Positions 20,383 through 28,117 of a stretch of DNA of 64,000 nucleotides are shown in pieces. Under the pieces are notes generated by a model that had not been told where the DNA came from, ran no database searches, and was given only the letters and a program-made list of their open reading frames with translations. This DNA is from Vicugna vicugna. Taxonomy: Eukaryota. Location: contig MU062233.1 of NCBI GenBank assembly GCA_013265495.1, positions 6,478,554 to 6,542,553 of the forward strand, given 5' to 3'. The translations under genes and the position numbers were made by a program. Position 1 is the stretch's first letter, and each line of letters starts with the position of its first letter.

Positions 20383-20655
20383 TTATTTTAACACTTAGTG
20401 CTTTTACTGTGTGTCAGGCTCTGGCAGGCCTTGTTCTAAGCATTTTACAAATATTAACTCATTTAATCATAACAACCCCAAGAGATATGTACTGTTAGCC
20501 TTTTTTACAGATAAACAGAATCATTTTACGTCTTATGGAGAACAGAAGCAGAGAGGCTAAATGTCTTACTCAGAGCTAGTAAGTTGCAGAGACAGGATTT
20601 GAACCTAGGCAGACTAGAGGGATCTATATTGTTAACCGCTGAACTACGCTGCTTC
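20383..20655 (-). mobile_element. MIR, near full length
   Basis: tgtgtcaggc...gttctaagcattttacaaatattaactcatttaatc...ggatttgaacctaggcagact. Confidence 0.8.
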
Positions 20656-22580: not shown

Positions 22581-22873
22581 CTTGATTTTGTCATAAGCTT
22601 ATTTTAAGTTTAGTTAAGGAAACTCATTTGGCTATGAGAACTCATTCAAATTTTCTAAGGGAACTATGATGATACAATTAGACAGCTAGTTAAGGAAAAT
22701 ATCCATGAAACAACACAACTTTTTATAAAATTGTCAGGTTTCAATTCTAGTAACCCATGAGATAGGGCTTAGAGCCTCTTCGTAATTACATCATTCCAGA
22801 ATTAGTAACTATTGTCACAAACTTTATGGGGAGGGAAAAGGAATAAAAGATGGTCAGTGCTGATAAATACAGG

Positions 22874-22879
22874 TTTAAT
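22874..22879 (-). terminator. Proximal SRP14 poly(A) signal ATTAAA
   Basis: TTTAAT on +, about 275 nt past the SRP14 stop. Confidence 0.5.
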
Positions 22880-23153
22880 GATATAGTGCTCTTCATAGGT
22901 GGCTACAGAGACTTTAAACTATAATCCAAGAATATACAACCATGCAACACAGACCACTTAGCCAGCTCTAAAATAGACTGGTTTCTTAAACTACCGTGTA
23001 AACACTGCAGCTCTTCTTCCATCCAAAGATGACCCTAATCTCACGTGACAGGTTATTATATGGGAATCAGAAACCCAGCTTTGTGGCCAAAAGTAAAACC
23101 AAAAGAACAGCATTTAAGTGGTTAGTTGGTGAAAGCAGGAAGTCTGGGTCCCT

Positions 23154-23243
23154 TCACTGTGCTGCTTTGCTCTTCTTGCTCTTGCTCTTTCTGTCCCTCT
23201 TCTTCAGCCCATCCATGTTAGCTCTCAGTAGGTTTGAATAAGC
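23154..23243 (-). CDS. SRP14: SRP14 exon 5 coding part: AYSNLLRANMDGLKKRDRKSKSKKSKAAQ*
   Basis: Recognisable SRP14 C-terminus with basic KRDRK (res 96-100), stop TGA. No acceptor directly upstream, because it is fused to a cDNA-like copy of exons 3-4. Confidence 0.93.
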   Translation of the reverse strand, partial: AYSNLLRANMDGLKKRDRKSKSKKSKAAQ

Positions 23244-23317
23244 CATCTGAAACTTATTCACTTCTTTGGAGCTCACCACGGTGCTGATCTTCTTCTTCCC
23301 ATCAGTAGCTCTTAACA
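23244..23317 (-). pseudogene. SRP14: Intronless copy of the SRP14 exon 3 3' end (41 nt) plus all of exon 4 (33 nt), fused to exon 5
   Basis: 23277-23317 is identical to 25002-25042 and 23244-23276 is identical to 23810-23842. They are joined exactly at the mRNA splice junctions. Confidence 0.9.
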
Positions 23318-23809
23318 ATAAAAGACAGAGCATGACCTTAGTGGGAAGAGCTGCAAACTGGTGGAGCAGCTGCCTCATTTCCATAATAGATTAGGGGAGC
23401 CAAACTCAGAAAGCCGATCTGATAAAGCATATAATTCTATGGGACACTTGTATCCTATGGGAAATGGTATAAGGAAAACACCCTTACATTATAGCAGTTC
23501 TGCAACACTCACCCACGGTGAGTTGCATGTTTTTTACTTTTTTTTTTTTTAAGCAAAAATGGAAACCTGCAGGCAATTTCTTAAGCCATGCGGTAATTAG
23601 AGAGTATCTGAAGCCTAAGACAACAAAATCCAGTTAAAAAAGACAAAATCAGTATTGAAAGTAAAACTCATAGCCTGGCAGCTTTTACTTATAAACTGCT
23701 GGTAAAACATCACAGGACAGCAGTGAACCTGAACAGCAATCTTAACCCAGTGGTAAACATGCTGACTCCTGCCCTGAGGAAAGGGACACAGGGATCACCA
23801 GAAACTCAC

Positions 23810-23842
23810 CATCTGAAACTTATTCACTTCTTTGGAGCTCAC
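23810..23842 (-). CDS. SRP14: SRP14 exon 4: VSSKEVNKFQM
   Basis: cccccttcttttccag|GTG...ATG|gtgagt, 33 nt. Confidence 0.96.
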
Positions 23843-25001
23843 CTGGAAAAGAAGGGGGAAAGGTCACCCATTATCCATAGAGGAATCATCTGCCTCACCC
23901 AGTAACAATTCAAAAGCCTCATGAAGCCAACATCCTAATCCTTAAAAATACTTCTTCCCAATTGCAGAGATCACAATATGCTAAAAGCTATCTTTCTACT
24001 TCACCTTCCTCTACCTGAGGAACATGCAACGTAGCTCTGCACTTTTTTCCACATGAGAATTGTTCCAAGATAGGAAAGAGGCAGAAGTGGGCTCCTTAAG
24101 AAGCGATGCTTCTCCCCTCTGTTGAAATCTTACACATGTGGCACTGACTTTTTCCCCCTCGGCTCTGAGAGATATCAGACGACTTGGTATTAACCTTTTA
24201 TACAAGATACATTTAAGTTACTCCCTCCCCATCTTATTTTAAACCTACCTTCCATTAATTCAGACCCATTTAAGCAAAATGAACGCTACTGCAACAAGAG
24301 ATCTACCTCTGAAGTCTCCTTAGTTTTCTGTATTTCATGATGCCCAACTTTATTTTTAAAAGCCACATAAGCTTGCTTTACTGTAAAAGTCTTCAAGGTA
24401 ACTAAAATAGGGAGACTTAATCAACTAATTATGGTCTATCATATCTTATCATCTGGTTAGAGGGCAGTCCAATTCTACCCCAGCAGCATAAAAGAGTATT
24501 CATTTGGAATCCAAGGAGTCTCTTGCTTTCATATTCAACCTCCACCTTGAAAGGAACACTAGGACTCTTGACTAAATTATATGCTCTCAAATACAAAGTT
24601 TAACATAATACATGTTTGGTACATGAATCACAAAGACACAATAATCATCTTAAAAGTAAAAGCATCATCTGGTACCAAGAAACTGTTCACTGAAAGCCCA
24701 GCACAGTAAAGGAATAAGGAATCAAATACACCAACTGCTCCTGACAGTGCTACTAAGAGTAAGGACCAATATGCTAATTTTATTTCTAACAGGTGTTTGA
24801 CTTTTACCCTTCATTTTAATTTTGCTCTTGAGTTTTCTACTACTAACATAATAAAAGAAGACCCTGATCCCAAAACAGCTGGGGAGGTAGACACTAGGCT
24901 TTATTTAAACAAAACAAAAACACCTGGTTCAGCTATACCCCGTCCTCAGTTAAGTTCAAGTCTTTAAACTCCAAAACTGTAGTTTTAGGAATCCAACTCA
25001 C

Positions 25002-25114
25002 CACGGTGCTGATCTTCTTCTTCCCATCAGTAGCTCTTAACAGACACTTGTTGTCTGAGGGCTCAAAGCCCTCCACAGAACCTTTCCTTGGAATGGGTTT
25101 AGTCCGACCATCAT
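25002..25114 (-). CDS. SRP14: SRP14 exon 3: (Y)DGRTKPIPRKGSVEGFEPSDNKCLLRATDGKKKISTV
   Basis: atttttcatgcag|AT GAT...GTG|gtgagt, 113 nt. Confidence 0.97.
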
Positions 25115-25636
25115 CTGCATGAAAAATACATCCTAGTGAACATGACCACAGTCGCTGTTAGCAGGTAGACAAAAAGTTAATTAGTAGGGAAGGGATACAC
25201 AGGATACCTAATCCACCTCCACTGATCCAGTTCTGTGAACTACATCATTGCTATCACCGACGGCTTGGCCACACCTTGGAAAACTACTTGCTTTGCTACT
25301 TCCACGATGGGAACATTGTAATATCAAAGCAGCTTAAATCTCACTAATCGTAGCGAGGTTTGGGATCCTTGACAAAAAGAAGGGCCCTAACATGCCTGGG
25401 GCCCTCTGGAACCGGAATCGGTCTAAGTGGTTCAGTGCTGGGGGCCGCCAACAGCCAGTCCCTAATACTTCGTTCGGTCCCTCAGCCCTGAACATGCCCA
25501 GTACGAACATGCCCAGTACAAGATGGAGGGAGGCAGGGGAAGGCTGGGCTGCGCGGCAGACAGACTGCCTGTGGCTCCCAGTCACTAGGCACCCGCGCGG
25601 CCTCCCAGCTCTCTTCCGGCGTCCACAGCTGCTTAC

Positions 25637-25709
25637 ACTTCTTCAAGGTGATGAACACGCTGCCCGACAACCGGCATTTCTGGAACAGCCTGGTCAGCTC
25701 CGTCAGGAA
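25637..25709 (-). CDS. SRP14: SRP14 exon 2: FLTELTRLFQKCRLSGSVFITLKK(Y)
   Basis: ttgtattccag|TTC...AAG T|gtaagc, 73 nt. Confidence 0.97.
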
Positions 25710-25851: not shown

Positions 25852-25875
25852 CTGCTCACTCTCCAGCAGCACCAT
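25852..25875 (-). CDS. SRP14: SRP14 exon 1 coding part: MVLLESEQ
   Basis: gccgggATGg...CAG|gtaacg. The five exons total 333 nt, giving 110 aa plus stop. Confidence 0.97.
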
Positions 25876-26182: not shown

Positions 26183-26852
26183 GCTGTATGCTGGCCACAT
26201 TACCTAACAGTTTGGCGCTTCAGTTTCCTCAACCTGTAATAATAGTATCCACTTCACAGTGTGGTTGTGAAGGGTGAGCGAATTTGTGTTAAACACCTAC
26301 AACATGATACGAGGTATCATACCGCAGATCACTGCCTGTTCATCAACATTTTAAAAGCACAAACGAGTTTTCTAAATGGAAATTTTAAATGGTTTAGCAT
26401 TGTTTATGATTTTTCTCTAATTTACTGGTCAGACCTCTTATTTCAGAAAGGTAAATAGATGTTAACATTGTTGCTTCCTTTAATCTTGCGGTTTTCTCTT
26501 TATTTTTGGATTTTTAATCAGTATTCTGATAAACTGCTGCTGAATTCTGATAAAATGACTGGCACAATTTTGAATAAGGTTATACAAAGGTATATATGTT
26601 CCACTGGGTTAAATTTTTCATGAAACTTTAAATTACTGAATTTCTTTTCAGTTGCATGTGGTCTTTTGATTGCACATTGTACAAGGATAGTTTTAGTTAA
26701 ATATATTATGTTGTACACCAGAAATTGACCCAACATTGTAAATTGACTATACTTCAATAAAAAAATAAAATAAACGTGATAAATGAAACAAAAAATAAAT
26801 AAACACCTACAACAGCGCTTGGCCCATAGAAGGTGCTCAATAAGCATTAGCT
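26183..26852 (+). mobile_element. MIR split in two (26183-26304 and 26800-26852) by a retro-insertion
   Basis: The halves rejoin into continuous MIR consensus across the duplicated taaacacctacaaca. Confidence 0.8.
26305..26799 (+). pseudogene. 5'-truncated retro-insertion of an unidentified mRNA 3'UTR-like sequence, containing a nested ~70-bp L1 tail
   Basis: 15-bp TSD (26290-26304 and 26800-26814), AATAAA at 26769-26774 and an A-rich tail. Confidence 0.7.
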
Positions 26853-27726: not shown

Positions 27727-28117
27727 TGTCTTAGCTTCCTATTGCTGCTAAACAAATTGGCACAAACTTAGTGGCTTAAAACAACATGAGTCTATCCTTT
27801 ACAGGTCTGGAGGTCAGAAGTCTAAAATCAATGTGTCTGCAGGGTTGCATTCCATCTGTTTCCTTGCCTGTCTAGAAACCACCTGCATTCCTTGGATCGT
27901 GGCCCCTTGCTTCCATTGTCACATCTCCAACTACTGACTTTGATCCTCCTGCCTCCCTCTTATAGGGACCTTGTGGTTACACTGCGCCCTCCTAGATAAT
28001 CTCCCCGACTCAAGATCCTTAATGTAATCACGCCTGCAAAGTCCTTTAAACATGTGACATATTCACAGGTTTCAGGCAGGACATAGATATCTTAGGGAAG
28101 GGTTGAGGGCTACCATA
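27727..28117 (-). mobile_element. MLT1 (MaLR) solo LTR
   Basis: tgtcttagcttcctattgctgct...aaacttagtggcttaaaacaaca...gtaatcacgcctgcaaagtcc...taccata. Confidence 0.85.

Follow-up and report, generated by a model that had tools for sequence, protein, structure and literature searches.

A private block of spliced SRP14 sequence at the intron 4/exon 5 border of SRP14 in a vicuna draft assembly is more likely an assembly error than a scar of RNA-templated repair

On the minus strand of the window (the whole 64-kb stretch of vicuna DNA that was analysed), the last coding exon of SRP14 is immediately preceded by a block of spliced SRP14 sequence. As judged from its exon 4/exon 5 joint, the block derives from SRP14 RNA that had already been spliced, DNA template switching being rejected as its origin. 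An assembly error is the likelier cause, ahead of a rare scar of RNA-templated repair, and we regard the block as probably not a real feature of the SRP14 gene of the animal. We have modest confidence in the specific reading that reads from a retrocopy, or reads resembling cDNA, gave rise to the block during assembly or gap closing. We lean to a chimera because the block is absent from five other camelid assemblies, because no indexed sequencing run rises above the share expected without an insertion, and because the llama, guanaco and vicuna drafts were produced by a short-read SOAPdenovo/GapCloser pipeline.

The five coding exons on the minus strand of the window are those of SRP14 (Table 1). 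Canonical splicing of the true exons gives the 110-aa camelid SRP14, for which exact matches in Camelus ferus, C. dromedarius and Vicugna pacos were recorded in a protein-collection look-up, and in the predicted camelid protein KRDRK occupies residues 96-100, the location given for it in the original prediction. True exons 1-4 are intact; this bears out the claim that exons 3 and 4 persist beside their spliced copy. Introns 3 and 4 are present in the window together with these two exons. The donor of exon 3, gtgag, is identical to the first 5 nt of exon 4. Downstream of the coding part of exon 5, genomic 3'UTR is followed by flanking DNA, and there is no poly(A) tract.

Table 1. Positions in the window of the SRP14 features and of the private block
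Feature	Position	Strand	Remarks
SRP14 exon 1, coding part	25852..25875	-	encodes MVLLESEQ
SRP14 exon 2	25637..25709	-	
SRP14 true exon 3	25002..25114	-	113 nt; its final 41 nt supply the beginning of the copied stretch
SRP14 true exon 4	23810..23842	-	33 nt, phase 0; flanks cag| and |gtgagt
Intron 4 3' end, retained	23319..23345	-	branch-like cactaag and pyrimidine tract ctctgtctttta; stops at the A of the native AG
Window-private block	23245..23318	-	74 nt: T (23318) and 73 nt of spliced SRP14 (exon 3 tail and exon 4 minus its last G)
SRP14 exon 5, coding part	23154..23243	-	AYSNLL...KAAQ and stop; stop codon 23156..23154

RNA contigs L006-L010 are Camelus-like (97.5% identical) and carry the canonical SRP14 message only. 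They align to the window down to at least 22600 (stretch 22600-23153), and the SRP14 3'UTR therefore extends well beyond the ATTAAA near 22875. EIF2AK4 (GCN2) lies on the plus strand below ~22300, tail-to-tail with SRP14, as it does in the other camelid assemblies; a window-private deletion of 9 nt at 20576 falls within its range.

Read on the minus strand, positions 23317..23244 reproduce the last 41 nt of exon 3 (25042..25002) and all 33 nt of exon 4 (23842..23810). The two pieces of this 74-nt stretch are joined as in the mRNA, and exon 5 begins immediately afterwards, at 23243. The identity is exact and so are both joints, as had been claimed from the letters of the sequence, and a 74-nt exact match with two splice joints reproduced in it cannot reasonably be put down to chance. 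A repeat finder returns the same stretch as two exact copies, of 46 nt and 35 nt; no other exact short-range duplicates occur in the 64-kb window. The two copies overlap by GGTGAG, because intron 3 begins with gtgag and exon 4 with GTGAG.

The donors of the block are exons 3 and 4 of the same gene, 0.6-1.7 kb away. The microhomologies at its three joints are 0, 6 (GGTGAG) and 2 (GG) nt; at the joint between exon 4 and exon 5 the genomic donor and acceptor sites share at most 2 nt, yet this joint is exact. A template of RNA (or of cDNA, or a retrocopy) explains both the exon 3/exon 4 and the exon 4/exon 5 joint, and the exactness of these joints supports the original proposal that the block came from spliced SRP14 RNA. 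The block has neither a poly(A) tract nor a target-site duplication, and exon 5 and the 3'UTR are present once only.

The description of the left joint, in contrast, has to be revised. The original prediction took ctctgtcttttatTGTTAAG for the native end of intron 4, whereas in all five of the other camelid assemblies the intron ends ...ctctgtcttttag|GCTTATTCA, with cttttag as the acceptor. In the multiple alignment (MAFFT), the private block falls between the A and the G of this acceptor, and the retained intron end is collinear with ...ctctgtcttttag in L001-L005. The order in the window is ...ctctgtctttta, then T, then TGTTAAG...CAGATG, and then GCTTATTCA; the left joint as written is ...ctctgtcttttaT|TGTTAAGAGC. 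An insertion of 67 nt had been predicted, together with an allele 67 bp longer than its orthologues. The extra length is indeed private to the window, while its actual amount in the multiple alignment is 74 nt (23318..23245). The microhomology of 7 nt that had been assigned to this joint does not exist either, and one unexplained T stands in its place: this first base of the block (23318) differs from both the intron (g) and exon 3 (C). Equivalently, the block may be described as T and the 74-nt spliced stretch 23317..23244 in place of the acceptor g. The block is inserted cleanly, with no flanking sequence lost, and is in register with exon 5 on the homologous side. A possible mark of end joining is the one non-templated T at the left joint; the right joint is seamless and in register with exon 5, which points to homology and not to end joining.

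Five public camelid assemblies (L001-L005), from which the gene was retrieved through the exact SRP14 protein, made up the comparison set. Three of them (L002 to L004) we take, from their accessions, to be a wild Bactrian and two dromedary assemblies. The other two are the domestic Bactrian camel assembly (L001/L011; PMC12905343) and the alpaca reference GCF_048564905.1 (L005/L015; PMC13663546). The 74-nt block is absent from these five assemblies (L001-L005 and L011-L015). BLAST alignments to all five break exactly at 23319/23244, and from 23244 to 21613 the alignment is uninterrupted, which amounts to a collinearity downstream of the block of at least 1.6 kb, well beyond the polyadenylation signals. 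Across 22.4 kb, the window shares 99.2% identity with alpaca and 97.5% with Camelus; it is a genome of the llama/alpaca type other than the alpaca reference. The block is the sole window-private insertion of more than 4 nt across the 22.4 kb compared, and the remainder of the span looks clean. Logan-derived matches (P0001/P0135 and similar) were set aside as non-camelid; they are without the duplication.

Some other length differences were seen in the same region. At 27859-27909, upstream of SRP14 on the minus strand, the window has two private deletions of 21 and 22 nt, ~50 nt apart, each flanked by a direct repeat of 3-5 nt (CAGAT; AAG), and the deleted sequence is kept in all five other camelid assemblies. 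Intron 2 of SRP14 contains a perfect 15-nt tandem duplication at 25490-25519, with GAACATGCCCAGTAC present twice on the plus strand. This duplication is found in the alpaca reference and not in the Camelus assemblies, which makes it a change of the llama/alpaca lineage. The stretch 26290-26814 aligns unbroken in all five of the other assemblies, and is therefore old and not peculiar to this assembly.

The block would have consequences for splicing if the allele were as written. With the native AG split, the first AG after the branch site and the pyrimidine tract is that of ttgttaag|AGC. Its use would join exon 4 to AGCTACTGA and is predicted to give ...KFQMSY-stop, a product of 83 aa without KRDRK 96-100; the AG that follows also predicts early termination. 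In-frame predicted products require AGs within the block. The tttcag|ATG site (23247-23248), by which exon 4 is joined to ATGGCT, would add one Met, and the AAG sites would give in-frame duplications of 15-17 residues. These outcomes, including the 83-aa protein ending in QMSY-stop, reproduce those of the original prediction for the sequence as written. Canonical SRP14, as predicted from the letters, is unobtainable by any GT-AG splice from this allele. The basic pentapeptide of human SRP14, the equivalent of KRDRK, is required for elongation arrest, and loss of the C-terminal basic residues abolishes arrest (PMC4238359), as the original prediction had held.

A collection of 15 billion proteins contains the canonical 110-aa protein; the product with one extra Met, the 83-aa product and the ORFs crossing the junctions were each absent from it. 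This look-up says little, since contigs built from 31-mers would be interrupted at the two repeats of 46 nt and 35 nt.

The shares of sampled 31-mers in indexed sequencing runs give a further view of the locus. For 23100-23500, the expected share is 0.798 for a genome with no block, 0.938 for one with no block plus the spliced message, and 1.0 for one with the block; the best indexed run reaches 0.79. For 22700-24300, the corresponding expectations are 0.952, 0.985 and 1.0, and the best DNA run reaches 0.91. None of the indexed runs exceeds the no-block share, although SNPs may explain the shortfall and DNA runs were seemingly unranked in the first search. The run shares fit a genome without the block, and such shares cannot prove absence.

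In the artefact reading, the DNA read set would have contained spliced SRP14, the source being either a processed retrocopy at another genomic locus, young or polymorphic, or cDNA carried over into the DNA library. Such spliced reads would agree with the gene in exon 5 and part from it precisely where intron 4 meets exon 5, with the result that the assembly graph would branch there and the contig would break. Scaffolding or gap closing may then have put the spliced branch in series between the intron-4 and exon-5 contigs instead of discarding it, and a one-base mis-join (T) would have remained on the side without overlap. Both ends of the block fall exactly where the native genome and the mRNA diverge, and whatever the word size K, the native genome and the spliced message together account for all words except the K words that contain base 23318. 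Ends at the points of divergence are what one expects of two graph branches entering exon 5 and laid in series. The destruction of the only canonical route to normal SRP14 also counts for an artefact.

The N runs of the window are 130-175 nt long and ~13-23 kb apart, and by these lengths and spacings the window may be one of the draft scaffolds of llama, guanaco and vicuna. The drafts of these three species were produced with SOAPdenovo 2.04 (-K 41 -d 1 -M 2) and two gap fillers (PMC7331169 and its supplement), and blood RNA-seq was made from the same animals (PMC7331169). The T, the 74 nt and 25 nt of exon 5 add up to exactly 100 nt, which is one read at the default 25-nt overlap of GapCloser; this arithmetic is numerology and only suggestive. 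SRP14 readily forms intact retrocopies in mammals, and many 'SRP14-like' entries exist. For example, a red deer SRP14-like copy (L016:1501-1833, GCA_910594005.1) is an intact, intronless ORF of 333 nt that encodes 110 aa. This red deer copy sits within the range of another gene (DUF2340 family).

Several points count against an artefact. An overlap- or graph-based contig stage cannot make the no-overlap left joint (intron ...ctttta / T / TGTTAAG), and either a sloppy gap-closing step or a real molecule is therefore required. Within 1.6 kb of the block, neither N runs nor other traces of gap closing are seen, and the surrounding 22 kb looks clean. At K=41, the spliced-only edge of the graph starts at 23312 and not at 23317, which leaves 6 nt unexplained. 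Moreover, a retrocopy or cDNA carry-over in this genome is a putative source only. A reading of the 46-nt shared stretch as k-1 of a k=47 graph was rejected, the only documented K for the llama, guanaco and vicuna drafts being 41, which does not put the edge start at 23317. A literature search on cDNA-contamination artefacts yielded nothing pertinent.

Against the artefact stands the reading that the block is a real allele, probably private and heterozygous, that arose in the germline or early embryo by transcript-templated repair. This we regard as the less likely reading, with a substantial chance of being correct. A break or nick would have occurred at the intron 4/exon 5 boundary, and the antisense 3' end on the exon-5 side would have paired with spliced SRP14 mRNA or cDNA. 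A reverse-transcribing polymerase would have extended this 3' end through exon 4 and 41 nt of exon 3, after which end joining would have connected the extended end with the intron side and added one T. As a speculation, the boundary would be the exact limit of an mRNA:DNA hybrid formed over exon 5, which could explain the position of the nick. The resulting allele would largely inactivate SRP14: the first AG would give the 83-aa protein, which has lost the C-terminal helix and also the basic pentapeptide on which elongation arrest depends, and only the weak internal tttcag would yield a near-normal protein with one extra Met. Such a repair is consistent with the clean insertion, which keeps perfect register on its homologous side and has a single non-templated base at the opposite end. 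Class 2 templated sequence insertions show such hallmarks of end joining and can include spliced exons (PMC5110952), and spliced mRNA is able to template break repair in human cells (PMC12065846). Furthermore, SRP14 is highly expressed and its introns are short, the left joint is not obtainable by overlap assembly, and the neighbourhood of the block is otherwise well assembled. However, the block is in one draft assembly only and absent from five others, the indexed runs offer no positive support, and the break would need to fall within 1 nt of the exon boundary. A housekeeping gene would also be mostly inactivated; loss of the C-terminal basic residues of SRP14 abolishes elongation arrest (PMC4238359). 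The full form of this reading, a real germline scar of one-ended repair in which spliced mRNA of the gene itself served as primer or template for synthesis at a nick at the exon border and the product was then end-joined with the introns kept, is proposed still more tentatively. If it were correct, a naturally occurring intermediate of intron loss, as in the reverse-transcriptase model, would have been caught in a housekeeping gene that is highly expressed. We know of no germline report in which a gene has received its own spliced sequence and retained its introns.

Two further routes were considered. In serial replication template switching (FoSTeS/MMBIR), a fork would have copied a 46-nt piece spanning the exon 3/intron 3 border and a 35-nt piece around exon 4, before going back to exon 5. 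Both donors do lie within 1.8 kb upstream in the same orientation, and the middle and last joints have microhomologies of 6 nt (GGTGAG) and 2 nt (GG). The exon 4 segment, however, stops exactly at its boundary and exon 5 resumes at its first base, where only 1-2 nt are shared, and the first joint has no microhomology. Three switch points that all lie on splice junctions are what an RNA template would predict, and for DNA switching they would be a very improbable coincidence. A FoSTeS/MMBIR templated insertion was rejected on this coincidence of switch points with splice junctions, and we consider it highly improbable. An L1-mediated, 5'-truncated processed SRP14 retrocopy that landed in intron 4 of its own parent gene has an even smaller, nearly negligible, probability. 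The copied sequence begins within exon 3, as in 5'-truncated retrocopies, whereas the poly(A), the target-site duplication and the second exon 5/3'UTR are all missing and the downstream sequence is collinear for at least 1.6 kb. The missing second exon 5/3'UTR and poly(A) tail refute such a retrocopy in intron 4.

The block may also be compared with the nearest known systems. It has in common with the class 2 templated sequence insertions, or TSIPs, of Onozawa and Aplan (PMC5110952) a short RNA-copied patch that can contain spliced exons, the lack of a poly(A) and of a target-site duplication, and, as a possible mark of end joining, a non-templated base at one joint. The known insertions of this type have distant donors, unrelated breaks and end joining on both sides (PMC5110952). 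In contrast, the block has its own transcript as the donor and one side in perfect homologous register with the next exon, and as real DNA it is putative. With RNA-templated double-strand break repair (PMC12065846), the common features would be the spliced mRNA of the broken gene as the template and a cellular polymerase as the reverse transcriptase. The scar of that repair is a precise loss of whole introns (PMC12065846), whereas in the window introns 3 and 4 are kept and spliced sequence is added, as if the RNA had served one end only and the other end had been end-joined.

Compared with an L1 processed pseudogene such as the red deer SRP14-like copy (L016), the block likewise consists of spliced SRP14 in the form of DNA; it differs in being 74 nt only, in having no poly(A) or target-site duplication, and in its place within the parent gene, where it is in register with the exon that follows. 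Short-read drafts are also subject to misassembly and gap-closing errors caused by retrocopies or cDNA. The block resembles such errors in beginning and ending at exon borders, where spliced reads that share exons with the parent gene diverge from it, and in being confined to a single draft assembly. It differs from them in that no gap mark is adjacent, and its no-overlap left joint is unusual for graph errors.

If the block is the artefact that we favour, spliced reads from a retrocopy or from cDNA carry-over can plant a false, gene-breaking insertion at an exon border, and such insertions should be filtered by annotators and in loss-of-function screens on short-read drafts. If it is real, it would be, to our knowledge, the first natural germline case in which a gene's own spliced transcript was copied back with the introns kept. 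It would then be a probable null allele of an SRP subunit, with a direct bearing on RNA-templated repair and intron loss in mammals.
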